Positions 20,461 through 64,000 of a stretch of 64,000 nt of DNA are shown one piece after another (the stretch's first letter is position 1; each line of letters opens with the position of its first letter). The notes under the pieces were generated by a model. The model was not told where the DNA came from and made no database searches. It saw only the letters and a list, made by a program, of their open reading frames with translations. Source of the DNA: Thalia democratica (Eukaryota); contig OZ241834.1 in NCBI GenBank assembly GCA_965202585.1, positions 744,001-808,000 of the forward strand, written 5' to 3'. The position numbers and the translations under genes were made by a program.

Positions 20461-20835
20461 CTAGTGTTGCAATTTTAGTCTGAATTTAAAGATTTTTTTT
20501 TTCACCATTTTAAGTCTTAGAAAAAAGAAATCAACTAGAACTGACAAATACTGAATTTAGCAGTTAAATTTAAAAAAAATCATTTTTTGTCATTTTCAAA
20601 AATAAACGACTTAGCCTGATTTAGCCAAACTTAGCCTGCAACACTGTTATAAAAATTGACTTTAGGCTGAAACTTGGTAACTAAATTTTTAAGTAAGTTA
20701 TTTTGAAAGTATGAACCAACCTCGAACCGTCTGGACACGTTACCTGTTTTGTTTGAATATTTTACTGAATTTATCTAGTCATCTTGTAGTATTTAATATT
20801 CAATTAATTATTTATAGTTTATTACTATAAACTAG

Positions 20836-21052
20836 AAATGTTACGCCCAGCAGCATTTAACAAACCCAATAAAAACTTGAAATAAAATCAAGTTAGGATT
20901 TAATGCTCTGTAGACGAGAGTATAACTTTGTAAAAAAATGCTAAAAAACAAAGTTATACAGTTGATTAATTTTGGACAGTTTCATTAGCACAAAAGTATA
21001 TACGTAGCTGGTTGGGAGCCAACCACTTACTTGTACTAGTCACCATGTCCAT
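20836..21052 (-). ncRNA. Putative intronic H/ACA-type RNA, type b, copy 1
   Basis: Ends in ACATTT. Has a GGACA/TGTCC 5' stem followed by an ANANNA (AAATTA) H box, a TAACTTTGT/ACAAAGTTA middle hairpin, and a long 3' hairpin CGTCTACAGAGCATT...AATGCTGCTGGGCG. Lies in the intron upstream of the UBX exon. Confidence 0.7.
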
Positions 21053-21351
21053 TTGCCATACAACAAAATTTTAATATGCTTATATACGAACTTAAAATTC
21101 TAAATATGTCTATTGTCTTTATAAGACTGAGGAAGTGAGATTGTTCATAACTACTTTGGATACTTTCGAATGCACAGAATATATGCGCGATTGGTGACTA
21201 GCCAACCACTTACTTGTTCCTTTCCGAAGTTACAAATTTAAATGTGCTTAAGAATCATTTTTGCTAAATACGTATCAAACTAGCTATATTCACTTTTCTA
21301 CTAAAAAAGTTAAGTAGATTTTCAACATCACATATTACAGTGTATTTAAAC

Positions 21352-23026
21352 TAGTGATGTACCGGACTTACTATCCGGGTCCGGCCGGATATTGCCATTT
21401 TTGTCTGATATCCGGATCCGGCCGGACTCTAATTTTAAAAAAAAGTCCGGATCCGGTTCCGGCCGGATTCTAATTAGAAAAAAAAGTCCGGATCCGGGTC
21501 CGGCCGGATCCTAACAGAAATCCGGCCGGACCCGGACCTAGTTAGTAAAAAAGAGCATACTGAAAAGTATTTTTTCAAAAACAAACCCTGTGTAAATTAA
21601 TAAGAGTCATTTTCGTCAGTTAAAATTAAACACTTACTGTGATTGGCTCATTTTGTACACGTGACTAATTTACATTTGTTTACATTTAAACTATGAAATA
21701 AAGATTTCAGAAATGCAACTCTTTACATATGTTGTAAAATTGAAAACTTTGGAATGAATACTTGCATTATTTATTGTTTAAAGTTGAGTTCAGAGAATAT
21801 TTAGAGTTAATACGGTTGAATGTACGAGCCAATGAGAATCATATGACGAAATGTTTCAAACTAAATACTGATGCAACAAGACATCAGAACATGACAGGCA
21901 GTTTATATGTAAGCAGTTAGTTAGTTTGGTGTGCAGCTTGAAGCAACAAAATATCTTGAACTTTTTTGATAATGCTTATTGTAAGTAGTGTTTTGTTTTA
22001 AAAGTGAATATTTCAACTGGTATTTAATTGTTTAAATATCTAAGCCAGGTTTATAGTTTAATAGTTTATAAAAATTTTACAGTTTCTTCTTTACTAAAAG
22101 TTTTATTTAATTTTTAGTTTATTGTTTTAAGTCTTTTGATATAGATATAAATAGCTTCCAGTTTTTAAAGTGTTACCAAAGTAATTAATAATTTTGTATA
22201 TGCTAGTATTTCTTGTTGTGTTTTATAAAAACAATTCATCACTCAAAACTGTCGTGTCTGATTATAGAAAGTAGTCTCAGTTAGAATTTAGTATTTGTAA
22301 GATATTAATTAAATAAGGTAGGATTTAATTATGATGGGTAGTACTAATAAGTTAAGTGTACCACAATCAGTCCACAACTTTACTACCAAATTGTCAACCT
22401 TTGCTAGCTGTTCTACTGATTATTAGATTAAAGTAATTTTTTCATTTTTTAAAAACCTCATTTTGACTCAGGCTTGTTTATACTCACTCTAGTTAGTTTT
22501 ATTGACTTAAACAGTGGCAACCCTGCTAGTTTCAAAGTTATTGGGAATTTTAGAAAATCTTGGACTGCCTCAGCCTAGTTTAGTTTTTTATAAAAACTTA
22601 GGCTAGTTTTCTTTCAAATTTTGAATGAGTTTAAGCTGATCCAGTTTTTAATATTTGGTAATTTTCTAGTGTATTTTGTTCAAGAACTAGATTTCAGATT
22701 TTTAATTGTAAATAACACCTAAATTTGTAAACCTTGTGGCTAGCTGTTCTACTTATTATTAGATTAAATTTCTTTTTTTTTCAGTTTTTGAAAACCTCAT
22801 TCTGACTCAGGCTAGTTTATACTAGTGATGTACCGGACTCACTATCCGGGTCCGGCCGAATATTGCCATTTTTGTCTGATATCCGGATCCGGCCGGATTC
22901 TAATTTGAAAAAAAAAGTCCGGATCCGGTTCCGGCCGGATTCAAATTTGAAAAAAAAGTCCGGGCCCGGTTCCGGCCGGATTCTAACTTGAAAAAAAAGT
23001 CCGGATCCGGGTCCGGTACATCACTA
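21352..23026. mobile_element. Non-autonomous hAT-like element (composite), copy 1
   Basis: TIR TAGTGATGTACCGGA...TCCGGTACATCACTA. Near-perfect 8-bp TSD ATTTAAAC/ATTTTAAC. Subterminal CCGGATCCGG repeats; a second left end starts at 22,823. Confidence 0.88.
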
Positions 23027-23628
23027 ATTTTAACATAAAATCAGTTAATCAATAACTAAATTATCTTTAATTACGTAATATATTCAAGGTAATAAAAACC
23101 CACGATTCTTAAGAATTACATTTTGACTATCAACTTTATACACAAAAAACTTACATTGTAACATTAGTGTATCTTATATCAGTATCTGTTCAAATTGGCT
23201 ATTTATATATAATATTTATTAACCAGTTACAAAATTTTAAAACTTGTTAGTTACTCAATAAATCATGCATAATTTTTCTATGTACAATAAGCCAACATTA
23301 CCGCAACAAACCTGTATCCTGGCTTCAGCAGCCGAAGGTTTAGCTTGAACTTGTTGGGTGGCTGAACTACTCGCGCTCACATCTTTTCTAGTGATTTCTT
23401 CTGTTGAGCAGCTCTCCTTTCCATCTGATCTTGTTTTATCTGTTGTCTAACCTTCTCTTTCGCCAGTTTGTCTGCTTGCTTCTCACGCTTCCTTTGTTCA
23501 ACTTGTTTCTGCATCTCTCGCATCTTCAAGCTGTTTGTTTGTATATTAATCCATTTAGAAATTTTACAAGTCACAATTTATATCATAAGAATATTTTTTA
23601 TATTTAAAAAATTTCAAACAAAAATTAG

Positions 23629-23842
23629 AAATGTTACGCCCAGCAGCACTTAACAAACCCAATAAAAACTTGAACATATAATATCAAGTTAGGATTTAAT
23701 GCTCTGTAGACGAGAGTATAACTTTGTAAGAAGGAGAAAAAACAAAGTTATACAGTTGATTAATTTCGGACAGTACAAGAAAGCACTAAAGCATAAACAT
23801 AGCAATTAAGCTATTTAGTCAGTACTTGCAGACTGTGTCCAT
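23629..23842 (-). ncRNA. Putative intronic H/ACA-type RNA, type a, copy 2
   Basis: Same three-hairpin layout, H box and terminal ACATTT as copy 1. Lies in the intron upstream of the coiled-coil exon of copy B. Confidence 0.7.
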
Positions 23843-24680
23843 TTAAAATAATTAAAAAACAATAATAAATATAAAATTTATCTTATACTTACTTATAATT
23901 CTACAGGATATGGAATTTGGTGATTTTAAAAGTTCATGGTTTGTAACGGTGCTGCGAGGGTCAGTTCTGTTAAAATATTGTAACATTAATATTTTATGTT
24001 AAAAAAAAATTATGTAAAAATAACTATTTACAATTATTCATATATGATGTAGTTTATCTCAAAAGCTAGTTTAAAACATTGATAGCTTTTTGACAAAAAA
24101 AAAACTTTTAGAGCACTATTAGTCAGTCCTGTTGAAGTTAAATGGTTTTATTAAAGTAAATAATTACTTTTATGAAGAATTTTATAATTAACAATTATTT
24201 TTTAACAACAAAACACATTTGTCAGCACTTTTTAGCTATAACTTTATTCGTTATTTAAACTGAGTAATTTAATGATGGCTTAAACTCAAAATTAAAGTTA
24301 ATAATTTTCTTCTCAAAAAAAGAGTTAAGAATTGAATCACAACTTTCCCACCATTACTAGTCACTTAAAGAAATATTTAAAACTTAACATAAACCAAACA
24401 AACCGAGATCTTTGAGTTGTTTTTCATAATCTTCCTCCACAAATGTCTTGCTGGGATACACAGAACGGAACCCGTACTGGAGAGTCGGATCATGATTGTC
24501 TTTTCTGTTCATCATTACAAACAATCTCACAGCTGAAAGTTGTTCTGTTGATTTGAAAGTTTGAACCAGCCTCGAACCGTCTGGACACGTTATCTGTTTT
24601 GATTCAAGTTTTACTGAATTAATCTATTTATCTTGTACTATTTAATTTTCAAGTAATTATTCGATATTACTATAATGCAG

Positions 24681-24886
24681 AAATGTTACGCCCAGCAGCA
24701 TTTAATAAATCCAATAAAAACTTGAACATATAATATCAAGTTAGGATTTAATGCTCTGTAGACGGAAGTATAACTTTGCCATGCACGAAACAAAGTTACC
24801 AGTTTATTAATTTTAGACAATCACGTTTAGCACAAAAGCATATGCGTAGCTGTAGCTACTTGCTTGCACTAGGGTACCATGTCCGT
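24681..24886 (-). ncRNA. Putative intronic H/ACA-type RNA, type b, copy 3
   Basis: Same layout and ACATTT end. The 5' hairpin is most similar to copy 1. Lies in the intron upstream of the UBX exon of copy A. Confidence 0.7.
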
Positions 24887-25100
24887 ACTAAAAAAAAATA
24901 CTAAGACTGTATAGAATTTCTAAATTAACAATATCTTTATTGTTTATATAAAGTTGTAGAACTTTAATATCGTTTAACATGATTAAATAATATAACGTTA
25001 GCTATTTCAAATATCAGACAAACTTAACTTACATCTTAAAATTACATATAATTTACTTAAAAATGTTCAGACTTAGTTTCAAATAGATTTTTAAATTAAG

Positions 25101-26892
25101 CAGGGTTGCCACTGATCAAGCTGAGAAAAATTTCCTGACTTTTTCAACACTTATTATTAAAATTTTCCTGACTTTTCTAAATCAAACACTTAATTTAAAC
25201 TTCTAATAAAATACATAATCTACATTTGAAACTATAAACAGATTTCAAACTAGTTTAAGTACAGGTTAAGGCCATAGGGGGGGGTAGGCCATGTTTTTTA
25301 CAAGTTGATCTTATTTTATAGAGTTTTTACTAAGCTTCAAGTTGCTTTCTACCGTTTTTAAAAATTCGAATTAGTTTTTGAGATATGACCGGCCAAAGTC
25401 GGGCCGCATAACAGGTTCCTTATGGGGAAGGAAAAACTAAAACGGCAAAAAAAGACTAATGCATTCAAAATCTATCTCCTCCTTCATTTTTTAAGCAATC
25501 TTCTTCAAACTTTCACAGTCTATTCTTTATACAATAACAAAAAAACTTTATTTGTAACTTTAAAAAATTTCAAGTAAAAATACCTTTTTTTTGAAAAAAA
25601 AAATTTTTTTTTGATAAAAAATCACTTTTTTTTTTTAATTTTTGTCATAAAATTTTTATTTTTTAAAATTATTAAAATTCACAAATAACGTTTTTTTCTC
25701 ATAATGTAAGGAACATTTCATGAAAATTTGAAGAAGATTGCTTGAAAAATGAAGGAGAAGATAGATTTTAAAGCCCGTTTTTAAAAACTCGAGAAAAATG
25801 GCTTTAAAGTTTTGGTAAACTTTATTTTTTTATATAAATATTTTTATATAACCGGTCATAAAAAAAAAGTTACTTAATATTTTTAAAATCTAAAAAAAGC
25901 ATCTGAAAGATTATGAAATTTACTATAATATAAGTCTATATGTTATTTTTGGTCAAAAAATGGCTTCTACCCCCCCTATGGCCTTAAAACAACAGTTTTT
26001 TTTTTGCTGTATTCAATTATAAAACTTTCATTACATCACTTGAACCATCTGTGTACTTACAATAAATAGCGCTACCAGAATACTTGTATTATTACCTTAT
26101 AAACACAGCTTGTCTGAAAAAAGACACTATTTTTTAACATTTCCCAAAATAAATGTATCTAAATAAAGGAAACGAAATATAAGAAACTTTTACAATTAAA
26201 ACATTAAAACAAAAACGAACTTTTACAATTAAAATCATAAAGAATTAAGAACTTAATCAAACACCGTTTTTTTATCAAAATTTTTTCATCTAATGAAGAT
26301 ATGGTTTCCTTCATCTGATCTACATCCCGCTACATTTTCTTGGCAGTTAAAACCATTTGCCTCATTTTATTTAAATCATTCTCATCTGCTGCCCCTACAG
26401 ATCTTTATAAAAGAATTTTTTTTTCTAAATTTAGCCACAATTTGTGGGCTTCATTCTTTTTTTTTGCACTCATTTATTTTTACCTCCAGTTTTGCTGCCT
26501 CAATTATTTAAATATACTTTTGTGTATATATCACAGTTTCACTATGGTAGTGTCCTTGCTACAGATCATCAATACTAAAAAGCTTACAAAAAGCTCAAGT
26601 AGGGTAGTTGTTCAATATGTTAATAGAAAAATTTTAAGTTTTATAAAGGATATTTTATTACTTTATACAAGATGAAGGCATTGGAATTCAAATAATTTTG
26701 TAAATTTCTAGAAATTTTTTACAATTTTAGTTGGCTTTTTAAATATTAAACTAATTTTTCACCATTTTAAGGCTTTGGAAAATAAAGAACTTTATAAGTT
26801 CAAACTAATAAAATATTTTTTTTGTCAAATTTCCTGACGTTTTGCAATTTTTTTAGTTTTTCCTGATTTTTCCTGACCTTGTAGCAACCCTG
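25101..26892. mobile_element. Non-autonomous DNA transposon with CAGGGTTGCCA termini and 6-bp TSD
   Basis: Left end CAGGGTTGCCA, right end TAGCAACCCTG, flanked on both sides by ATTAAG. TTTCCTGA subterminal repeats. A decayed coiled-coil reading frame on the minus strand (~26,500-26,270) resembles a transposase C-terminus. Confidence 0.75.
25270..25983. mobile_element. Kolobok-like MITE (TTAA TSD) nested in the 25,101-26,892 element
   Basis: TTAA|GGCCATAGGGGGGG...CCCCCCTATGGCC|TTAA, with an internal inverted repeat (~25,465-25,520 vs ~25,720-25,770). GG termini with a TTAA TSD fit Kolobok rather than piggyBac (CCC). Confidence 0.8.
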
Positions 26893-28628
26893 ATTAAGTT
26901 TGTTAGTTTGAGGCTGAATAAACGCTGTTTGTTAAAAGATCAAAATCTTTAGTTTGAAATCTACGTAGTTATTATTATAACTTTATCAATAATTGATATC
27001 AGATTATTCCGATTGACATCTTATATGTTTCAAATTAATATCAATATAGTCTTTCATATATTACATAATCCTTTAGTATCAAAATACGTAATCCTGTTAT
27101 AACTTAAGAACCTAATCTATCGGTTTGAAAAAAGTTTATGCATAACAGCTGAAATAATTATAAACATTAAATCAATTAAATTTTTGTATGAAATTTCTTA
27201 AGCTAAATCATTCATAGTTGCATTGTAACACTATTCCAAGTTTCACTAGAATATCGTTTTGTTTTTAAGAGAAAATTAAAAGTTTATTGCAATTACTATT
27301 CTTGCCCGGGCAAGTCTTATGTAACAAAAGGGAGATAGAGAATAAAGAGAATGAGAGCGTATTTCTCTTTTATGACGAATTATCAAAACTGACTGATGAA
27401 ATGTTTTTATATAATATTTGGGTCAAAAGCTGATAGGCCAGACTGAGTTGTGTATTGAAACAGGAGCTGCAGAGACTGTTTACAAGAAAGACACTTGAAT
27501 ATTGGTATTGAGTTGTTTTATAAAGTTTTAGTATATATATATTTATAATATATATTGTTAGATTTTAAGATTGTTATTTAAAGAAGTTTGTAACTTTCTT
27601 ACTGTACATTTTTATAGCTTTTATGATTTTCAACAAGTGATTTATTAAAAGCATTTTTCACTTAAGTGACATACTTTTATAGTTCTTATAATTTTAACAA
27701 TTGATTTTGTATTCATTGAAGTTCGTTTAATAGAAAAACCCACTCAATTGTTGTGCCTGGTTATTTATAGTAGTATTGATATCTAGTAATACTAAGTCTA
27801 TAGTAAAGTGTTATTTCTGTCAAATTCCAATAGTAAAGTCACACTCAGATAATAAAAACAAAAATTATACACATAAACCCGGTATCAGTACCACCAAAAT
27901 ATTTACTAGTTTTGATAAAAATAATCATTTAATAATCATTAGCTACTACCACAATATATAAGACCTATTTATTCAATAAGCCTACTTTAAGTAAAACAAA
28001 CTATATTACAACACACCATGCTTCAGCAGCCGATGATTAAGGTTGTACTTGCTGTGTACTACTGCTAGATGATATTTTATTAACTCTAGATTATCTTATA
28101 TACAGATATAGTGATACAGTTATAGCAACATAATAATAATGTTGTAATTAGTAGCATAGTTATGTTTTCTCCAACAAACCTGTATCCTGGCTTCAGCAGC
28201 CGAAGGTTTAGCTTGAACTTGTTGGGTGGCTGAACTACTCGCGCTCACATCTTTTCTAGTGATTTCTTCTGCTGAGCTGCTTTCCTCTCCTCCTGATCTT
28301 GTTTTATCTGTTGTCTAACTTTCTCTCTCGCCAGTTTGTCTGCTTGTTTCTCACGCTTCCTTTGTTCAACTTGTTTCTGCATCTCTCCAAGCTATTTTTT
28401 GTTATTTTGTTGAAAAATTAAAGTTTAAAGATAAGTTACCTGATTGTTTTTTATGAAACTTGTTTGACAATTCTTTATTTTTGTATCTGGTATATTAAAT
28501 CTAATATTTGTAAAATTGTGTGATAATTTATTTCGTTTAGTATTTTGCTTAAAACTAAAAACACTTAACAAATATGTGTCTCAAAGTAAATCATAGTCAG
28601 TTATTTTAATTTTTATATATAAATGCAG

Positions 28629-28839
28629 AAATGTTACGCCCAGCAGCATTTAACAAATCCAATAAAAACTTGAAATAATATTAAGTTAGGATTTAATGCT
28701 CTGTTAGCGAAGTTTAACTTTGTAGAAAGGCGGAAAAACAAAGTTATACAGTTGATTAATTTTGGACAGTATGGGAAAGCACATAAGCATAAACATAACA
28801 ATTAAGCTATTTACTCAGTACTTGCCAACGACTGTCCAT
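28629..28839 (-). ncRNA. Putative intronic H/ACA-type RNA, type a, copy 4
   Basis: GGACAGT/ACTGTCC stem, AAATTA H box, middle hairpin, 3' hairpin CGCT.../...GGCG and ACATTT end. The 5' hairpin is most similar to copy 2. Confidence 0.7.
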
Positions 28840-31663
28840 TTGAAATAATTATAAATTTACCAATACACACATTTTTCTAGTTAATAATAGCTTTAATTTA
28901 ATTAATTTTTTCTCATTTTAGTTGGCAGAATTTAAAATGGTTCAAAAAATTTAATAGAAAAATGTATTTGGATAAGTTATATAATTAATGTAAACTGAAT
29001 TTTATGATATATTATTATTACATTAGCTTTCTTATAGTTTAAAACATTTATATATCTTTTTTAACTACATGATCTTACTTTTCTTTCGTATGAATATTTA
29101 TACAACATTTTAACTTAATACTAAATGAACAAAATAACTAAATGGTGTTCTAAGTGGATTCATTACATTAATTTTAAACAGAAACAAACTCTTCTCTCGT
29201 TCTTTGTTTTCCTAACTCTCTGACCGTCTTTCTTTCTCCCACCTTTTTATTCAATCTTTCCTGCAATCTGTACAAGTTTATTTTAATGTGCTTAAAATTT
29301 TTCAGCTATTTATCAACGACCAATTAGTACAATCAGATTATAAAAAATATTTAACTTCCCATAAAAATAATTTGTGCTTAGCTAAGAGATAGTAGATAGA
29401 ATATTTTGTTTAACAGCTAGGATGTGAATTTATCAAAATTAAATCTTAAATGGTTGATAATTTCACAAAACTTATTAGCTATTGATATAATAATAGTTAT
29501 AAGATGTTTTCACTCGTTAAATCACCAGAACACTATTTAATCTTCTACAATAGAGAATATACACTTAATACAACTTAACTTTTAAAATAATCAAATATTT
29601 TAGAAACTTTTAAGCTCTTTTTTTTTCTTTTTTGGATTGTTTACTTTGTTCAGAAGGAGCTGTTTTTTTATTTTTTCTATGAAATTTATTTATAAGTTTT
29701 GATAAAGCTAAAATTTATTTAACTATGGTTCTTGATAATTATTTATTTTTTATCTAGAGTATCAGTGATTAAATTTGAACTATTTATTAATTAAAACATT
29801 TTGAACATGTAGACTGTAGGTAGACTAAAATTTACATCATTCAAACATAACTCATATAAAAATTTTTTTTATTTAGAATTTTTATTATTCCATTTAACTT
29901 TAATAAAAAATGACAAGATTATTTTCGAACATGTACTAAAAAAAACTTGAGAAGATTAATGATCAAATATTCAACAGGTTTGAGGTTTTCAGTCATTCGA
30001 TATAAATGTTAATATATAAATGTCACATTACCTGTAGCAGTTGTGACACGACCGCTAACAGAAGGGGCATCTTGATTTGTGAGAATGAAATTTGTCATGG
30101 CTTCCAATCCCCATTTACCTTGTGCTTCCCAAGCTGCATTACTGTGAATTTAATAAAAATTAATACTTTATACTGCATTACTGTAAATTAAATAATCCGC
30201 TTATCAAAAAGTGGAAGGAATTGATGTATTTAACATATAACTTATATACTAAAAATTACTAAAATTATTTAGCTTACAAATGAGGAAAAAAATAAATATT
30301 TGGGGCAGTACTTAGTTGTTTAAGTAGGTAGTTGTGTGAGTAGTTCTATTTTTGGAGCTAAAATAAAATATAAATTTGTTTGATGAAATTAAATAATTTA
30401 CATATCAAACTATTTACTTCACTTATATATGAAATAAAGGACTTTCAAAAAATCAAATTTTTATATGACAGCACACAAATTTTGAGATACAATTAAATTT
30501 TTTTATAATATATTAAAGTAAATTTTTAACTACTAATATTATAGTAATTACTCAAAGTGTGATATTGCATTAAAATAACTTCTTATAATTAATACTATAA
30601 CAAAATATATTCCACACCTATGGTAAAGCTTAGCATTCAACGAACACACAAATTTATTGTTCTGAATACAGAAGTGTACTATATTAAAAGCATATAAATG
30701 ATTAATGTTAGGCTGTAATGATTATGTTAACAGTTGGTAACTAGCACTTGCAGATGTCCCCTTGAATTTAAGAATACATTGAAATTCTATCAGGTTGCCA
30801 AGAAGTTGTCAGTAACTGACAGATTCTGAAACTTGTATTTTGATAATGGCTTAAAGCTTTAATTTAGAGACAATCCCAAGCTAGTGGTTAACTAATGTTT
30901 TTCAAATATTGTATATTGACTTACTATTTACTGAGTGCTTAATATATAAGTTATATTGCTGTTTAACTTCATTCTAGTATGTGATTATGAAAATTGAAAT
31001 GTGTATTTACAATTGAAAAGAACAAAATAACAATTGATCCAATTATGACATGAATTAAAGAAGCTTAACACTATAAGTGTTCGTTTAAACTTAACTTATG
31101 GAACAATCTATAAGGTCAACTACAAGTTTAAACTAGGAACCATTCAACTACTAAATACAGCAAAAAGCTGCCTACTTAAGTTAATGGCTAACTGCGTACA
31201 GCAACAACTAAAAAGCCTAGATTTAACTATTCAAATACTAATATACATAAATATTACAAGAAACAAGTAAAAAAAGAGAATAGCTATTTTAAGCTCTCTA
31301 CCACTAAAAGCTGTACAAAAAGATTAAGACAAAAATATTTACTTGGCTTTGTACCATTTATATCTATATATACATAAAATGTTTAGAACATAAAAACTAA
31401 CTAGTTAAGCTTAACTACATTCATTACTCAATAATGTTCACGATGCTCTATATTCTATTATTTTCTTTTAATAACATTCTTTTTATATTTTGATTACAAA
31501 TTATTCAATTTTAATTTTAATCAGAAGTTGTAAGCAATAAATACCTACATATAAAATAGTACTAGATATTATATTATATTAGCTTTATACCCATACTCTA
31601 GTATAAATTTTCTTATTTATCTTAAGATCACATAAAAAAAAAATTATAGAAAATTTAAATCAC

Positions 31664-32100
31664 TTTTCAAATTTTAGATATAAGTCCAGGTGTCCACGTT
31701 GTTGATCCACAGCCACGTCCAAATCCTCCACGGAAGTCAAATTGCTGGGTTTGACCTGCACCAGCATCAGCCTTCTTGTCTCCTCCCCTGTACGCATCAC
31801 GGTCCTGTTTCTGATCTTGTTTGGGTGGCCAGTGATATTCTGCTGCAACTTAAAGGTGGCGATCTAGATAGGGAGGTGGTAACAGAGATACTAGATACCC
31901 TCATTGGTCAGGGTGTAGTGGTGGCCAGGATACATTTTTCATTTAGGTTCCTTTGCAGACGAAGGACTTGCAAACGAAGTTCATGACGTGCAGGTTGGGT
32001 CAGTTTCTGCGCGTTTTGGTGAGTATGGGTCCTCCTTGCATGCTTCGTCCTTGATGAGGTTTTTAAAAATCAGATTTTTATTGCGTTTTGGCATAAGAAT
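31664..32100 (-). pseudogene. RPS10: 40S ribosomal protein S10 (eS10) pseudogene
   Basis: Minus-strand fragments ILMPKRNK (start ATG>ATT), PNLHVM, LTNEGI*YL and [31 protein letters not shown] match eS10. Multiple frameshifts and stops. A TTTCAG acceptor lies 12 nt upstream (32,112). Confidence 0.92.
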
Positions 32101-33446
32101 GGTTACAGTTGTCTGAAATATAGAAACGTTTAGTGTGATATTGATAATGTAACATGCATTTTGTATATAATTACATATAGCTATAAAGTTATCTTGTATT
32201 TGAATTGTTGAAAAAGTTAACTAATAATAATTAATAATTGATTTAATACAACAAATTAATTCTAAACAAATTTACTTACATTTCTTTTAATTACAATATG
32301 TTGAAGTTGATTTACATATATTTTAATTAACATAAACTATATTATTATATTTAGAGAAATTTAAATCACGGCCTACATTAATTGACAAAAAAACGTTTAA
32401 ATGAAGTCAGTATATTTTAATTTGTAAACAACTTAACTGTGAACATATTTTCAACAAAATGGTAATAATATAAAAATTCTTTCGAACTAGTTCTATTTTT
32501 AGTTACTTGAACTACTAAAACCAATTTAAAGATTTTGTTTTGTTGTGAGGAATGACATTTGTAAAATACTGCTTTCAACATTTCAACAATGATTGTTGAC
32601 TTCGAGCAACAAATGCTATCAAAATTACAAAAAATTTCCAAACATATTCAAGAAATTATTCATTGGAGCTTTAAAGATGGAAGTGAAGAATAGCAAGTAC
32701 AGATCAGTCTTAAGGGTCCCAAATTGTTTTTTACTTGAAGAAACAAAAGAACTAGCTCTGAACCTAATGACCGCTGAACCAGAAAGTTATAATTGATTTG
32801 TTAAATAAAACATAATTATTATTAATCATAACATGCTGCAGGTCAGCTAAATTAAAGTCAATTTAATTCAACACAATTATGTCAGACAGGTAGTATTATT
32901 TTTAAATTTAAGCAATATTCTGATACATAGCAAAAATGTCAGTTTAGAAACAATTTTTATTTGTTTACAACTGGAATACATCAAGGATAAAAACTTTGAG
33001 CAAAATTTTTAATCAGCAATAATACAAACTATTGTTTCAAAAAAATTATTAGGAAACGTAAATATAAAGTAAAATTGTTTGAACGTATCTAGCAAAAATC
33101 TATCTAGTAAAAATATTTACAAATTATGATTTAAATCAATTTCTTAAGTCAGAATGAGTATATAAAAATATTTCTCTTAAACCGTAGAATTGTAAGAGAG
33201 TTTTAAAAGTACAACATTAAAAGTAGCATACATTACATAAATTTAACTGTATATTATAGTTTCAAGGAAAAATGAAGGTTAAGTTTACTACTTAAGAATT
33301 TAATATGTTCCAAAAAATATACATGTAATTTATATATTTGTATTGTTTATATATTTATTATACAATTCAAAAAAAAGGTTCAAGTACTTAATTTGGTTAT
33401 AGTTGTCAGTGAAACTTAAATAAGTTTATTGATATTATGTTGTCAC

Positions 33447-35228
33447 TAGTGATGTACCGGACTCACTATCCGGGTCCGGGTCCGGCCGGATATTGCCATT
33501 TTTGTCTGATATCCGGATCCGGCCGGACTCTAATTTGAATAAAAATTCCGGATCCGGTTCCGGCCGGATTCTAATTTAAAAAAAAAGTCCGGGTCCGGTT
33601 CCGGCCGGATTCTAATTTGAAAATAAAGTCCGGATCCGGTTCCGGCCGGATCCTAACAGAGATCCGGCCGGACCCGGATCTAGTTAGTAAAAAAGAGCAT
33701 ACTGAAAAGTATTTAAAAAAAAAAATCCTGTGAAAATTAATAAGATTCATTTTCGTCAGTTAAAATTAAACACCTACCGTGATTGGCTCATTTTGTACAC
33801 GTGACTAATTTACATTTGTTTACATTTAAACTATAAATACTCATTTCATGAAATGCAACTCTTTACATATGTTGTAAAATTGAAACCTTTGGAATGAATA
33901 CTTGCATTATTTATTGTTCAAAGTCGAGCATAGAGAATATTTAGAGTTAATACGGTTGAATGTACGAGCCAATGAGAATCATATGACGAAATGTTTCAAA
34001 CTAAATATTGATGCAACAAAACATCAGAACATGACAGGCAGTTTATATGTAAGCAGTTAGTTAGTTTGGTGTGTAGCTTGAAGCAACAAAATATCTTGAA
34101 CGTTTTTGTGAATGCTTATTGTAAGTAGTGTTTTGTCTTAAAAGTGAATATTTCAACAGGTTTTTAATTGTTTAAATATTTAAGCCAGGTTTATAGTAAA
34201 ATAGTTAATTAAAAATTTTACAGTTTCTTGTTTACTAAAAGTTTTATTTAATTTTTAGTTTTTTGTTTTAAGTCTTTTGATATAGATTAAAATAGCTTCC
34301 AGTTTTTAAAGTGTTACCAAAGTAATTAATAATTTTGTATATGCTAGTATTTCTTGTTGTGTTTTATATAAAAGGTTTATCACTCAAAACTGTCGTGTCT
34401 GATTATAGAAAGTAGTCTCAGTTATAATTTAGTATTTGTTAGATTTTAATTAAATAAGGTAGGATTTAATTATGATGGGTAGTACTAATAAGTTAAGTGT
34501 ACCACAATCAGTCCACAACTTTACTACCAAATTGTCAACCTTTGCTAGCTGTTCTACTGATTATTAGATTAAAGTAATTTTTCAGTTTTTAAAATCCTCA
34601 TTCTGACTCAGGCTTGTTTATACTCACTCTAGCTAGTTTTATTGACTTAAACAGTGGCAACCCTGCTAGTTTGAAAATTTTTGGGAATTTTTTAAAATCT
34701 TTGACTGCCTCAGGCTAGTTTAGTTTTTTTATAAAAACTCAGGCTAGTTTTCTTTTAGATTTTAAATGAGTTTGAGCTGATCCAGTTTCAATATTTTGTA
34801 ATTTTCTAGTGTATTTTGTTCATGAACTTGATTTTAGATTTTTTATTGTAAATAACATCTAAATTTGTAAACCTTGTGGCTAGCTGTTCTACTTATTATT
34901 AGATTAAAGTTCTTTTTTCCAGTTTTCAAAAACCTCATTCTGACTCAGGCTAGTTTATTTTAGTAATGTACCGGACTCACTATCCGGGTCCGGCCGGATA
35001 TTGCCATTTTTGTCTGATATCCGGATCCGGCCGGATTCTAATTTGAAAAAAAGTTCGGATCCGGTTCCGGCCGGACTCTAATTTGAAAAAAAAGTCCGGG
35101 TCCGGTTCCAGCCGGATTCTAATTTGAAAAAAAAAGTCCGGGTCCGGTTCCGGCCGGATTATAGTTTGAAAAAAAAGCCCGGATCCGGGTCCGGCCGGAC
35201 CCGAAATTGTGGGTCCGGTACATCACTA
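33447..35228. mobile_element. Non-autonomous hAT-like element (composite), copy 2
   Basis: Same TIRs as copy 1, perfect 8-bp TSD GTTGTCAC (33,439-33,446 / 35,229-35,236). Internal region nearly colinear with copy 1; second left end at 34,961. Confidence 0.92.
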
Positions 35229-58900: not shown

Positions 58901-61900
58901 ACATTGATTTTTAAGACTAAACACGAATAAACCGCGGGAGTAACTACTTCTTACAATCTAAAGCTTACAAAATGTTTTAATAAAGTTTTAAAAATAGTAC
59001 TTTAAGTTCAAAGTACTTACGATTTTATTGAGGTAACTCTCGTTTGTACTCATATCTCCTAAATTTGACTTTTCTAGGTCGATCCATGAATATAGTTAGA
59101 AAGATAAATCTCTCAGAAATATTTAAAGATATTTCTCATCTCTGTACAACCAAACACGGGTAAACCGCGGGAGAAACACTTCTTAAAAATTAAACCTTAC
59201 AAACTGTTTTAATAAAGTTTTGAAAATCAAAATTACCAGTTGATAGTACTAAGAATTTTCTTAAGTTAACTCTCATTTGTACTCATATATCTTGAACGCA
59301 ACTTTTCTCAGTCGATCTAAAGATAGCATAACAAGGCTGAAACTCTTACAAAAGTTTTAAGAAGTTTTATAGCTCTGTGTGACTAAACACGGATAAACGG
59401 CGGGAGCAAAAAAAAATTTTCACCATTTTGAAGCTTACAAACTGTAAAAATTAAGTTTTGAAAATCATATTAACAGTTCAAAGTACTTACAACTTTCTTG
59501 AATTAACTTTTTTTGTACTCATTTCATCTTAGTTCGACTTTTCTCGGTCAATACAAAGATACCGTGAGATAGCTAAAACTCTCAGGAACATTTTAAGAAG
59601 TTTCTTAGCTCTGTGCGACCAAACACGGGTACACGGCTGGAAATTTTTTTTTTACCAATTGAAAGTTATTAATTGTTTAATGAAGTTTTGAAAATCAAAC
59701 TTTACAGTTCAAAGTATTACGATTTTCTTGAGATGACTTTATGTTTGTACTGATATTACGTAAACGCGATTTTTTTCAGTTGATCAAAAGATATCATTAG
59801 AAAGCTAAAACTCTTAAGAACTAAATTATTTCTTAGCTCTGTGCAAACAAACACGTGTAAACGGCTCGAGTAAAATTTTCTTATCAAATAACAATTGGTT
59901 TTAATGAAGTTTGGAAAAACAAACTTAAGAGTTCAAAGTACTCACAACTTTCTTAAGATGACTTTACGTTTGTACTCATTTCTCCTAAATGCGATTTTTC
60001 TTGGTTGATTTAAAGATACCATTAAAAAGCTGAAAATCTTATGAAATTTTTAACATATTTTATAGCTCTGTGCAACAAAACACAAGTAAACACCGGAGTG
60101 AAAATTTCTCTTAAGTTAAAACTTACGAACTGGCTTAGTAAAGTTTTTAAAATTAAATTAACAGTTTAAAGTACTTAAAACTTTCTGGAGATTACTTTAT
60201 GATTGTACTGATATCACGTAAATGCGACTTTTCCTTGTCGATTCAAAGATATCATTAGAAAGCTGAATCTCTAAAAAAAAATTAAGCTATTTCTTAGCTC
60301 AGTGCAACCGAACACGAGTAATCGGCTGGTAATTATTTTAAATTAAACTGTTTTATTGAAATTTTGAAATCCAAACTTAAAAGTTCAAGGTATTCACAAC
60401 TTTCTTAAGATGACTTTACGTTTATACTTAGATCTCCTTAATGCAATTTTTCTCGGTCGACCTTAAAATACCATTAAAAAGCTTAAACTCATTTTAAATA
60501 TTTGCTAGCTTTGTGCAACGAAACACGGGTAAACGGCAAGAGTAAATATTTTTACCAGTTAAAACTTACAATCTAATTTATTGATATTTACAAATACAAA
60601 CTTAACAGTTCAAAGTACGTACAACTTTCTTGAGATAAATTTATGTTTCTACTGATATCACGAAAATGCGACTTTTCTCAGTTGATCAAAAGATATCATT
60701 AATAGCTGAAACTCTAAGGAGAATTTAAAGAGATTACTTAGCTTTGTGCGACCAAAACACGGGTAGACGGTGGGAGTAGAAATTTCATTCCGATCGAAAC
60801 TTACAAACTGTTTTAGTGAGGTTTTGACAACTAAATTAACAGTTCAAAATGCATTCAATTTTTTTGACATTTCTTTACGTTTGTAATGATATCTCCCCCT
60901 GAAGACTATTCTCGGTCGATCCAAAGATACCATTAGTAAGATAAAATTTTTAGGAACATTTTATTGAATTTCTTAGCTCTGTGCAACCACACAAGGCGAA
61001 CGACAGGTGAAATTTTTTTTTTTAATTGAAACTTAAAAATTGTTTTAATGAAGTATTGAAAATCAATTTAAAAGTTCAAACTACTTTCTTTTTTTTTGAG
61101 ATTACTTTCGTTTGTACTCATATCACTTGTAAGCGACTATTATCGGTATAACTAAAAATACCACTAAAAAGATAAAACTCTTATGAACATTCTATCATAT
61201 TTCATAGCTCTTTGCAAGTAAACACGGATAATCGCAAGTTGTGAAATTAAACAGAAGTGAAATTTCTCAAAAAAATTAAACTTTTAAACTGTTTAAATGA
61301 AGTTTTGAAAACCGATATAGAAAGTTCAAAGTACCTACCGTTTTTTAAATAAGTCTTTACATTTTTACACATATCCTGTAGACTCGTTTGTCGGTCGATC
61401 AAAAGATACGACTCATAAGCTGAAAGTTCATTAAATTTTTTTATCTTCGTGCGACAAAACACGGGCAAAAGGCGGAGCAGAAATTTCATACCGATTAAAA
61501 CTTAGAAACTGTTTTAATAAAGTTTTGACAATATGTAATTAATATCTAGTAATGTACCGGACTCACTATCCGGGTCCGTATCCGGCCGGATATTGCCATC
61601 TTTGTCTGATATCCGGATCCGGCCGGATCTTGATATGAAAAAAAAGTCCGGATCTGGTTCCGGCCGGATTCTAATTTGTTAAAAAAAGTCCGGATCCGAG
61701 TCCGGCCTGATTCTAATCTGAAAAAAAAGTCCGGATCCGGTTCCGGTCGGATCCTAACAGAGATTCGGCTGATTCGGATCTAGTTAGTAAAAAAGAGCAT
61801 ACAGAAAAGTATTTTTTCAAAAACAAACGCTTTGTAAATTAAAAAGAGTCATTTTCGTCAGTTAAAATTAAACATCTACCGTGATTTGCTCATTTTGAAC

Positions 61901-64000
61901 TCGTGACTAATTTACATTTATTTACATTTAAACTATGAAATAAACATTTTAGAAATGCAACTCTTTACCTATGTTATAAAATTTAAAACTTTACTCCCAA
62001 ATTGTTAAGCTAGTTTAAAGATTTTTTAAAAAACTCAGGCTAGTTTTCTTTTGTGATTTTCTAGTTAATTTTATTTAAGAACTTGATATTAATTGGTTTT
62101 AGATTGGTAAGGCTATAGGGGGGTCCTCCTTGATTTTTACAAGTTGATCTTATTTAATAAATTTTAATCTTAGCTACCAGATATTGTTTCTGTGACGTAC
62201 TTTATCTTTCTATCAATTTTCTTTTAGTAAATTTAAAGTTGTTCTTAGTTTTTTTTTAACTTTTATAGAAATGAAATTTTGTAACTACAAATGTAAGCTC
62301 TACTTTTTATGTGAAAACTAGTGATGTAACGGACTCACTATAAGAGTCCGGATCCGGCGGGATATTGTCATTTTTGTCTAATATCCGGATCCGGCCGGAT
62401 TTTGATATGTAAAAAAAGTCCGGATCCGGGTCCGGCCGGACCCGAAATTGTGAGTCCGGAACAACACTATTAATATCTAAAATTCAATTATCTTGAAATT
62501 ACTTTTGTTTGCTTATATCACGTGAGCTTAACTATTCTCAGTTGATCCAAAAATATCAATTGAAAGCTGAATAAGAAACAATTAAGGTTATTTCTAAGGT
62601 ATGTGCAACCAAACACGGGTAATCGGCGGGATTAAAATTTTGTACCAATTGAAAATTATAAACTATTATTATGAATTTTATAAAATCAAGTTAAGAATTC
62701 AAAGTACTAACAATATCCTTGAGATACATTTACGTTTTTACTCATACCTCCTGAAGGCGAGTTTCTCGGTCAATAAAGTTATACTGTTAGAAAGCTGAAA
62801 CCTTTAGAAACATTTGGAGATATTTCTTAGCTATGAGCGACCAACCATGGGTAAACAGCGGGAGTAAAAATTTCGTACCAATTGAAACTTATAAACTATT
62901 TTAATTAAGTTTATAAAAAGAAACTAACAGTTCAAAGTACTAACAATTTTATTGAGATGCATTTACGTTTTTACTCATATCTCCTGAAGGCGAGTTTCTC
63001 GGTCAATAAAGTTATACTGTTAGAAAGCTGAAACCTTTAGAAACATTTTGAAATATTTCTTAGCTATGAGCGACCGACCATGGGTAAACGGCGGGAGTAA
63101 AAATTTCGTACCAATTGATAATTATAAATTATTTTAATGAAGTTTATTAAAACAAATTAACAGTTCAAAGCACTAAGAATTTTCTTGAGATGCATTTACA
63201 TTTTTACTCATATCTCCTAAATGTGAATTTCTCGGTCAATGGAAATATACTGTTAGAAAGCTGAAACGTTTAGAAACATTTTGAAATATTTTTTAGCTAT
63301 GAGAAATCAAACACGGGTAAACGGCGAAGGTAAAAATTTCGTACCAATTGTAGCTTATAAACTATTTTAATGAGGTTTATAAAATCAAATTAAAAATTCA
63401 AAGTACTTACAATTTTCTTGAGACGCATTTACATTTTTACTCATATCTCCTGAATGCGTATTTCTCGATCAATGAAATTATACTGTTAGAAAGCTGAAAC
63501 CTTTAGAAACATTTTTAAATATTTCTTAGCTGTGAGCGACCAATAATGGGTAAACGGCGGTAGTAAATATTTCGATCAAGTGAAGCTTATAAACTATTTC
63601 CATGAAGTATATAAAAACAAATTAAAATTTCAAATTACTTACAATTTTCTTAAGATGCATTTACATTTTTCTAATATCTCCTGAATGCGAATTTCTCGCT
63701 TAATAAAAATATACTGTTAGAAAGCTGAAACGTTTAGTATTATTTTGAGATACTTCTTAGCTATGAGCGACCAAACACGGATAAACGGCGGGAGTAAAAA
63801 TTTCGTACCAATTGAAGATTATAAACTATTATTATGAAGTTTACAAAATCAAATTAACATTTCAAAGTACTTATAAATTTCTTGAGATGCATTTACGTTT
63901 TTACTCATATGTCTTGAATCCGAATTTCTCAGTCAATGAAAATATACTGTTAGAAAGCTGAAACCTTTAAAAACATTTTAAGAGATTTCTTAGCTATGAG
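55970..64000. repeat. ~233-bp diverged satellite array, open at the window end
   Basis: Recurrent TCTTGAGATG..TTTACGTTTGTACTCATATCTCC...CGGTCGATC.AAAGATA...AAACACGGGTAAACGGCGGGAG. The exact period is 233 bp in the last part (CTCATA at 62,741, 62,974, 63,207, 63,440) and varies with indels earlier. Confidence 0.95.
61547..62469. mobile_element. Non-autonomous hAT-like element (composite), copy 3, inserted in the 233-bp satellite
   Basis: TIRs TAGTAATGTACCGGA / TCCGGAACAACACTA, perfect 8-bp TSD TTAATATC (61,539-61,546 / 62,470-62,477), second left end at 62,319, Kolobok-like end fragment near 62,108. Confidence 0.9.

Follow-up and report, generated by a model that had tools for sequence, protein, structure and literature searches.

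A putative multi-copy, intron-encoded orphan RNA of box H/ACA type with three hairpins in UBXN1-derived duplicates of Thalia democratica

Box H/ACA snoRNAs lie in sense orientation in the introns of housekeeping host genes and consist of a 5' hairpin closed by a short stem and followed by the H box (ANANNA), and a 3' hairpin followed by ACA; the internal loop of the 5' hairpin has its top 15-16 nt from the H box. Genes of the GAS5/SNHG type are non-coding snoRNA host genes. A larger relative, U17/snR30 (SNORA73), is ~200-220 nt long, with multiple copies occupying successive introns of a single host gene. It possesses an internal hairpin, its conserved functional core is the 3' hairpin and one of its hairpins is not a modification guide (PMC7601244). 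Also documented are H/ACA RNAs with three hairpins and hairpins of H/ACA type that lack a usable pocket (PMC7601244).

The repeated unit found in the window (the whole 64,000-nt stretch of DNA that was analysed) shares the features listed above for H/ACA snoRNAs, as well as the length, the presence of an internal hairpin and the successive-intron arrangement of U17/snR30. It differs from H/ACA snoRNAs in an extra 12-bp hairpin, unusually placed so as to separate the H box from the 3' hairpin, in a 3' hairpin which is pocket-less 14-16 nt from ACA, in 'guide' strands which are its least conserved part, and in having neither an rRNA/snRNA target in scans nor an Rfam family. From U17/snR30 it differs in lacking m1, m2, 18S complementarity and a match to RF00045. 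As with GAS5/SNHG hosts, the UBXN1 duplicates of the window are broken in frame with splice sites and intronic RNA units intact. However, the putative host here arose by recent duplication of a protein gene and has become a pseudogene, with the intact parent gene still present. The favoured reading, to which a probability of roughly 0.6 is given, is that the units are genes of a lineage-specific, multi-copy, intron-encoded orphan box H/ACA-type RNA of ~205-218 nt that departs from the standard build by having three hairpins.

All four copies (206-217 nt) were confirmed on the host (minus) strand, where the earlier note had placed them:

20836-21052, minus strand: copy c1, type 1, 217 nt (CM 226 bits); P1 21046-21050/20974-20978, H box AAAUUA 20967-20972, middle hairpin 20920-20958, 3' hairpin 20844-20916, ACA 20839-20841
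23629-23842, minus strand: copy c2, type 2, 214 nt (CM 223.5 bits); P1 23836-23840/23768-23772, H box 23761-23766, middle hairpin 23716-23752, 3' hairpin 23637-23712, ACA 23632-23634
24681-24886, minus strand: copy c3, type 1, 206 nt (CM 198 bits); P1 24880-24884/24815-24819, H box 24808-24813, middle hairpin 24768-24799, 3' hairpin 24689-24764, ACA 24684-24686
28629-28839, minus strand: copy c4, type 2, 211 nt (CM 227.9 bits); P1 28833-28837/28764-28768, H box 28757-28762, middle hairpin 28712-28749, 3' hairpin 28637-28709, ACA 28632-28634

Pairwise BLAST between these copies gave E values of 1e-52 to 1e-87, and the mean column identity across copies is 86%. No N stretches were met. The two subtypes that had been distinguished (c1/c3 and c2/c4) are real, but their assignment to four introns of one gene was wrong: as the window holds ~1.5 tandem partial UBXN1 duplicates, c1 and c3 sit at paralogous positions, as do c2 and c4. 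Similarly, the introns are UBXN1-derived as had been proposed, but the hosts in the window are frameshifted, truncated duplicates and not the intact gene. The host features identified were as follows:

20680-20738, minus strand: truncated remnant of exon 6, downstream of c1; approximately the first 50 nt and the acceptor are kept, followed by unrelated sequence
23303-23565, minus strand: UBXN1 exon 5, copy b; same 4-nt frameshifting deletion as copy a, splice sites kept
24399-24596, minus strand: UBXN1 exon 6 (UBX domain); frame intact, AG acceptor and GT donor kept
28174-28391, minus strand: UBXN1 exon 5, copy a (coiled coil); 4-nt deletion (frameshift) and 7-nt deletion near the acceptor, splice sites kept
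30066-30140, minus strand: UBXN1 exon 2 (end of UBA domain) of the window duplicate
31703-32206, minus strand: decayed RPS10 relic, sharing ~72% identity with the intact RPS10 at the parent locus

UBXN1 exons 1 and 4 were not found within the window. The RPS10 relic identifies the window locus as the product of a segmental duplication of RPS10-UBXN1, whose intact parent locus is found 2.6 Mb from the window. Splice sites are retained in the frameshifted UBXN1 exons, and the loss of frame with retention of splice sites and units is what would be expected if only the introns matter. The decayed duplicates appear to persist as spliced non-coding hosts of the RNA.

The 801-Mb genome was found to contain 13 copies (with two different queries), although more diverged copies are possible. 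All 13 lie within gene introns in sense orientation, 12 of them in segmental duplicates of the one RPS10-UBXN1 locus and one in a LARP1-like gene. Copies occupy UBXN1 introns that follow one another, frequently at 70-100 nt ahead of the 3' splice site (84 nt from the end of c3 to the exon 6 acceptor), and no upstream promoter-like conservation belonging to the unit itself was seen.

The architecture described for the window copies was upheld in all its features. Their 5' hairpin is closed by GGACA/UGUCC(U), and right behind it stands the H box AAAUUA (16 of 16 copies, two species), which fits ANANNA and lies 1-2 nt past the closing stem. The extra middle hairpin (GUAUAACUUUGU/ACAAAGUUAUAC) was confirmed as a 12-bp stem with a variable loop, located in the hinge region, after the H box and before the 3' hairpin. 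The latter is long (span ~73-76 nt) and, as claimed, near-invariant among the window copies, which end in ACA and UUU, where similarity between copies stops. ACA is positioned 2 nt past the base of the 3' hairpin (GGCG-UA-ACA) in 15 of the 16 copies, one duplicate having AUA, and the 3 bases behind it differ between species. Where CGUC and CGCU alternate opposite GGCG all four pairs are retained, as had been noted, and helix-preserving changes were seen (G.U to A-U, C-G to U.G).

A 5' hairpin, a single-stranded hinge and a 3' hairpin were predicted in every copy, with agreement in the pair counts. The host strand folds more stably than the antisense strand in 16 of 16 copies (mean -53.1 vs -41.5 kcal/mol), and the folds of c1 and c2 have MFE z-scores of -4.6 and -3.8, respectively. 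Paired cells amounted to 96.3%, compared with 34-40% when partners were slid. Double changes were observed in 12 cells, a number matched by 0 of 500 shuffles. Pairs with double changes number 3, mostly between type 1 and type 2 5' hairpins; covariation is modest because the sequences are close. The internal loop of the 5' hairpin has its top 15-16 nt from the H box. Compatible substitutions indicate that the 3' hairpin is a near-continuous helix without a pocket 14-16 nt from ACA, this site being inside the helix CAGAGCAU/AUGCU-CUG, which is maintained by compatible changes. The base of its apical stem is 33-34 nt from ACA, and three bulges (2, 1 and 4 nt) together with a 1x6 internal loop interrupt its stem.

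Conservation in excess of the flanking intron, which the function suspected by the earlier note implied, was found both among paralogues and at the orthologous locus of a second species. Paralogue similarity falls to a random level at either end of the unit; some conservation is also seen in the short piece of intron that separates the unit from exon 6. The related species, represented by Tara Oceans contigs (L033, L034, and L077), has a syntenic RPS10-UBXN1 locus with 3 copies in introns 4, 5, and 6. Between the species 33 of 96 four-fold sites differ (~66% identity), whereas identity is 92-93% in the hinge, 86-100% in the middle stems and 81-100% in the 3' hairpin arms (91-100% without the 5' arm of Tara copies T1 and T3). 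Loop identity is 6-46%. With stems and hinge above four-fold sites and loops drifting, this pattern shows purifying selection on structure; judged by these comparisons, stems, hinge and boxes are under such selection in two species while the loops drift.

Further relatives were sought in JGI metagenome contigs by two exact-word scans, which gave 0 matches and 35 chance matches, and by a UBX-exon word search, which gave no match. The more distant RPS10 contigs L073-L076 are not syntenic and have no CM match. An exon-5 contig of a third species (L080) is 529 bp long and ends short of the introns.

As suspected in the earlier note, no Rfam family was found for the RNA: at the gathering thresholds and at E up to 10, window and Tara copies gave no match beyond a chance one to SNORA19 (RF00413). 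This was obtained for one copy at 23.6 bits (E = 3) against a gathering threshold of 80 bits; the alignment treats an ACA within the middle stem as the box, and the Tara copies have no such match. The RNA is not U17, and the absence of U17 motifs reported previously was borne out, m1 (AUAUUCCUA) and m2 (AAACCAU) both being missing and RF00045 having no match in the window at E up to 10. The genuine U17 of this genome is found in arrays on contig C4, with m1 AUAUUCCUU, m2 AAACCAU and scores of 34-42 bits. Two further resemblances were taken to be coincidental. A telomerase-RNA-like UCCUAAC lies within a helix of the 13-copy intronic unit, and a miR-103-like stretch (AGCAGCAUU) is on the opposite, less stable strand, with no miRNA family match.

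It had been proposed that a fixed 3' module is combined with different 5' guide pockets. This was not supported, as no part of the 5' hairpin is less conserved than its pocket strands, which drift like loops and match rRNA and snRNA at background only, and as the 3' hairpin is without a pocket 14-16 nt from ACA. The guide scan comprised nine 5' pockets and five pocket variants of the 3' hairpin. Against 18S, 28S, 5.8S, and 5S rRNA and U1, U2, U4, U5, and U6 it gave background, except for a weak candidate at U55 of U4. In the 15.5-kb rDNA unit the longest antisense match is 11 nt, equal to the shuffle expectation, and RNAduplex found no excess for four conserved segments against all targets. 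The RNA is probably not an rRNA pseudouridylation guide, given a 3' hairpin that is pocket-less at the catalytic distance and 5' pocket strands that are unconserved.

Under the favoured reading of an orphan H/ACA-type RNA, the transcript would be freed from the spliced intron via exonucleolytic trimming. Sets of dyskerin/NOP10/NHP2/GAR1 are predicted to assemble on the 5' hairpin with the H box and on the 3' hairpin with ACA, and because of this the RNA would be protected. Constraint falls on the upper part of the 5' hairpin, on the hinge of 15 nt, on the middle stem and on the 3' hairpin over its full length; by analogy with orphan H/ACA RNAs such as U17/snR30, these would most likely bind protein or another RNA. 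Copies within the genome may be homogenised by gene conversion. A more specific version, put forward only tentatively, is that of a non-guide H/ACA-type RNP, in which the two protein sets would only stabilise the RNA and the function would reside in the invariant hinge, middle stem and pocket-less 3' hairpin (e.g., in chaperoning or in scaffolding proteins, by analogy with U17/snR30 but with no relationship to it). Demand for the RNA would then keep the frameshifted UBXN1 duplicates alive as dedicated non-coding hosts.

If expressed, the units would constitute an H/ACA-type RNA family without assignment, from a marine animal lineage that has been little studied. Its most constrained parts are not guide sequences, and it would enlarge the small set of H/ACA RNAs with roles other than pseudouridylation guiding (such as U17/snR30 and telomerase RNA). 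The locus would also offer a natural example of a duplicated protein-coding host decaying to a spliced non-coding snoRNA host, with RNA copies evolving in concert. The alignment of 16 sequences and the covariance model could serve as the seed of a new RNA family and aid the annotation of related genomes.

The candidate in U4 raises the alternative of a working pseudouridylation guide (scaRNA), with the type-1 5' hairpin directed to U55, at the junction that precedes U4/U6 stem I, and the other copies redundant or retargeted. All three type-1 pocket variants reach this one site in canonical geometry (offsets 0/0, target U 16 nt from the H box), pairing by 8+5 bp in c3 (UGCGUUUA-UU-GCUAG), 3+8 bp in c1 and 4+5 bp in the parent-locus copy. 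The 13 bp of c3 were reached by 20 of 1000 shuffled guides across 6.4 kb of targets; however, the resulting p = 0.02 is not significant because about a dozen pockets and offsets were tried, and values for c1 (p = 0.14) and A_t1 (p = 0.38) are higher. The pairs include three G.U, and the orthologous Tara copy T2 retains just 2+4 bp. Terminal loops have no conserved CAB box (UGAG-like), the loops of both hairpins sharing no motif across copies or species, which is a further point against a scaRNA. Known pseudouridines of vertebrate U4 are at positions 4, 72, and 79, not 55. A guide of this kind, which would leave the 3' domain, the most conserved part, unexplained, is considered unlikely.

A series of copies in neighbouring introns of a single gene, frequently 70-100 nt ahead of the 3' splice site and with partial conservation extending towards exon 6, would also suit a cis-acting intronic structure controlling UBXN1 splicing or expression instead of a stable trans-acting RNA. 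However, the unit is repeated across three different introns, has one copy in the unrelated LARP1-like gene and is retained at loci with a broken coding frame, and the box placement suits a processed H/ACA RNA, leaving a cis role with a low probability. It is quite improbable that the unit is a small regulatory RNA precursor with a 3' hairpin cut by Drosha/Dicer, as for snoRNA-derived miRNAs. The nearly invariant arms, free terminal loop and ~73-76 nt of this hairpin are like those of miRNA hairpins, but the bulges and 1x6 internal loop which interrupt the stem make it a poor substrate, miRNA families gave no match at E up to 10, and the conserved 5' hairpin, hinge, middle stem and ACA placement would have no account.

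A non-functional repeat (a small mobile element or a hitch-hiking duplicated intron, similar through recent duplication and gene conversion) is very improbable: 12 of 13 copies do travel with one locus's segmental duplications, species-wide features and decaying copies do occur, but a transposable element or SINE should have many dispersed copies and not just 13, the second species has copies at orthologous intron positions, stems outdo four-fold sites in identity as loops drift, substitutions keep pairing and the folding strand asymmetry is not expected of junk. Gene conversion among copies could be inflating within-genome similarity, and features common to all copies within one species, among them the extended apical stem of all three Tara copies, show concerted evolution. 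Several copies in duplicate loci are decaying, one having AUA in place of ACA and others having disrupted stems, and decay is also seen in Tara copy T1.

The three-hairpin unit of the window is a structured RNA maintained by purifying selection. The four units claimed by the earlier note were all found, with the RNA-like strand being the minus strand and with two types that differ mainly in the 5' hairpin:

20836-21052, minus strand, copy c1 (type 1)
23629-23842, minus strand, copy c2 (type 2)
24681-24886, minus strand, copy c3 (type 1)
28629-28839, minus strand, copy c4 (type 2)

The copies align over 206–217 nt with a mean column identity of 86% and match each other with pairwise BLAST E-values of 1e-52 to 1e-87. 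Read on the minus strand, each unit possesses a 5' hairpin with a GGACA/UGUCC closing stem, a hinge (AAAAUUAAUCAACUG), a middle hairpin with a perfect 12 bp stem (GUAUAACUUUGU...ACAAAGUUAUAC) and a variable, U-rich loop, a 3' hairpin of 73–76 nt and the tail UA-ACA-UUU. Folding gave MFE z-scores of -4.6 and -3.8. The minus strand was more stable than its complement in 16/16 family members examined (mean -53.1 vs -41.5 kcal/mol), which fits several conserved G.U pairs.

BLAST searches of the 801 Mb assembly of this marine animal, in which the window is C10:744001-808000, identified an identical set of 13 copies with two different queries. Twelve of these lie in four loci, all segmental duplicates of one RPS10-UBXN1 locus. 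In the parent locus (C10:3.351-3.356 Mb) UBXN1 is intact, its UBA, coiled-coil and UBX exons being colinear with a relative's full-length transcript (P0121, 264 aa), and the introns preceding exons 5 and 6 hold one RNA copy each. The parent RPS10 is intron-less and its stop codon is followed after ~270 bp, on the same strand, by UBXN1 exon 1, an operon-like spacing kept in a second species (C10:3355970-3356300, stretch L018; L033:620-890). The best named matches of RPS10 were to ascidians (61–64%) and those of the UBX exon to crustaceans (~52%). The 13th copy (C10:2860401-2860618; stretches L010, L016), the only family member outside the UBXN1 loci, lies in sense orientation ~1.7 kb upstream of a LARP1 HEAT-repeat exon (PF21071, E = 1e-7).

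The window locus is a decayed, partly tandem duplicate of RPS10-UBXN1. Its RPS10 relic has only ~72% identity to the parent gene; UBXN1 exon 2 is present, but neither exon 1 nor exon 4 was found in the window. Along the locus, c4 is followed by exon 5, a 3.3-kb repeat stretch and c3; then come an intact exon 6, c2 and another copy of exon 5, and finally c1 and a truncated remnant of exon 6. Very high-copy repeats (24946-26700 and 27274-27855; summed contig depth 10^4-10^5 vs ~10^2 in the flanks) fill the long "intron" between the first exon 5 and c3. Given this tandem partial duplication, the two subtypes noticed earlier are real, but c1/c3 and c2/c4 occupy paralogous sites within a gene fragment that was duplicated, rather than four introns of a single working gene. 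The same frameshifting deletion of 4 nt is present in both copies of exon 5, whose AG and GT splice sites are retained; such frameshifted duplicates may persist as non-coding host genes.

Among paralogues, identity is 65–98% within the unit and falls to a random level of ~30–50% just upstream of the 5' stem; in most type-2 copies it also falls directly after ACA. A related locus was reached through RPS10 homologues (~91% amino-acid identity) on three Tara Oceans metagenome contigs (L033, L034 and L077), which have the same RPS10-UBXN1 arrangement and three RNA copies (T1-T3). The features of this locus and the identities between the two species are as follows:

L033:4751-4953, RNA copy in UBXN1 intron 4
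L033:5855-6092, RNA copy in UBXN1 intron 5
L033:6434-6654, RNA copy in UBXN1 intron 6
Four-fold degenerate sites, ~66% identity (33/96 differ)
Hinge, 92–93%
Middle-stem strands, 86–100% (excluding the 5' strand of T1, partly deleted, and that of T3)
3' hairpin arms, 81–100% (91–100% without the 5' arm of T1 and T3)
Middle and terminal loops, 6–46%

The excess conservation over flanking intron that the earlier note had set as a check was therefore observed both among paralogues and at the orthologous locus, and the comparison with this one other species is decisive evidence for conservation beyond chance. In the 16-sequence alignment, standard pairs occupied 96.3% of cells, compared with 34–40% when partners were slid, and 12 cells were changed on both sides, a count matched by 0/500 shuffles. 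Most single changes in the 3' hairpin were compatible with pairing (G.U to A-U twice, C-G to U.G, A-U to G.U), as was CGUC to CGCU against GGCG. A chance repeat or transposon is countered by this cross-species stem conservation and by the pairing-preserving changes. An extended apical stem (AUAG/CUAU) is common to all three Tara copies and missing from all 13 copies here, so there is also concerted evolution of the copies inside each genome.

An ANANNA box (AAAUUA) directly follows the 5' hairpin in 16/16 copies, and ACA lies two bases past the 3' hairpin in 15/16, the following three bases varying freely. The internal loop of the 5' hairpin has its top 15–16 nt from the H box. No conserved sequence was found upstream of the unit. 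The copies are in sense orientation, many of them 70–100 nt upstream of a 3' splice site. These features are consistent with an intron-processed box H/ACA RNA. The unit departs from the standard build in having an additional hairpin after the H box. In the 3' hairpin, the apical stem has its base 33–34 nt from ACA, the 14–16-nt position lies inside a helix (CAGAGCAU/AUGCU-CUG) and there is no pocket at the distance the enzyme requires; the would-be pocket strands (AAAUCC/GGGUUU) pair mutually, and compatible substitutions preserve this pairing. The extra hairpin and pocket-less 3' hairpin argue against a standard guide. However, three hairpins, and hairpins with a bulge too far from the box for catalysis, are documented for snR30/U17 and others (PMC7601244), so neither departure rules out membership of the H/ACA class.

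Searching the whole window against Rfam 15 at gathering thresholds gave zero matches, in keeping with the suggestion of a possible undescribed family. At E up to 10 the sole snoRNA match was SNORA19, which was rejected because it scored 23.6 bits where the threshold is 80, the alignment taking an ACA within the middle stem as the box. Genuine U17/SNORA73 genes were located on C4, five at C4:62185202-62189479 (~700 nt spacing) and two at C4:100187624-100190035 (stretches L023-L027), scoring 34–42 bits, under the Rfam threshold of 74. They carry m1 (AUAUUCCUU), a variant also present in C. elegans (PMC7601244), and m2 (AAACCAU) then ACA. As genuine U17 sits there, the three-hairpin unit is not U17, consistent with the earlier note, in which m1/m2 motifs could not be matched; the family itself is unassigned.

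Targets comprised 18S, 28S, 5.8S, 5S, U2 and U5 from the genome's rDNA repeat and U1, U4 and U6 from their own loci. The ~15.1-kb repeat (C26:18000-33500; stretches L031/L032) carries 18S-5.8S-28S, two to three 5S genes, U2 and U5, all on the same strand. Every distinct 5' pocket and five variants of the 3' hairpin were used in bipartite guide scans, which gave the same counts as shuffled controls. Antisense words to the complete rDNA unit reached at most 11 nt (the shuffle mode), and RNAduplex of conserved segments against the targets gave no excess. Target prediction, proposed in the earlier note, thus stayed at shuffle level bar one weak lead, in which the type-1 5' pocket would guide U55 of U4 snRNA. 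The pairing has canonical geometry (8+5 bp in c3, 3+8 bp in c1, 4+5 bp in the parent-locus copy), but shuffled guides did as well in 2%, 14% and 38% of the trials, respectively, many pockets were tried and only 2+4 bp are left in the Tara orthologue, making this role improbable. Within the 5' hairpin, variation is highest in the would-be guide strands, and the stem-loop above them hardly varies. A fixed 3' module combined with different 5' guide pockets predicts the reverse.

The unit would best be read (probability about 0.6) as an orphan RNA of the H/ACA type that is specific to its lineage, encoded in introns in multiple copies and built of three hairpins, with its function in the conserved hinge, middle stem and 3' hairpin and not in guide pockets. 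Four rival readings are each less consistent with the data than this orphan H/ACA RNA: the U4 guide, a precursor of small RNAs, an element acting in cis on splicing and a neutral repeat.

Two other repeats were observed in the window. A tandem satellite built of 271-bp units takes up positions 1 to ~15000 (at least 53–55 copies, 65–99% identity). A G+C-rich, internally palindromic repeat of ~170 bp (CCGGCCGGAU-type arms) occurs at least six times (21345-21515, 22816-22987, 33445-33615, 34961-35205, 61534-61716 and 62315-62446); it looks MITE-like and was the source of weak chance Rfam matches to bacterial sRNA and miRNA models.
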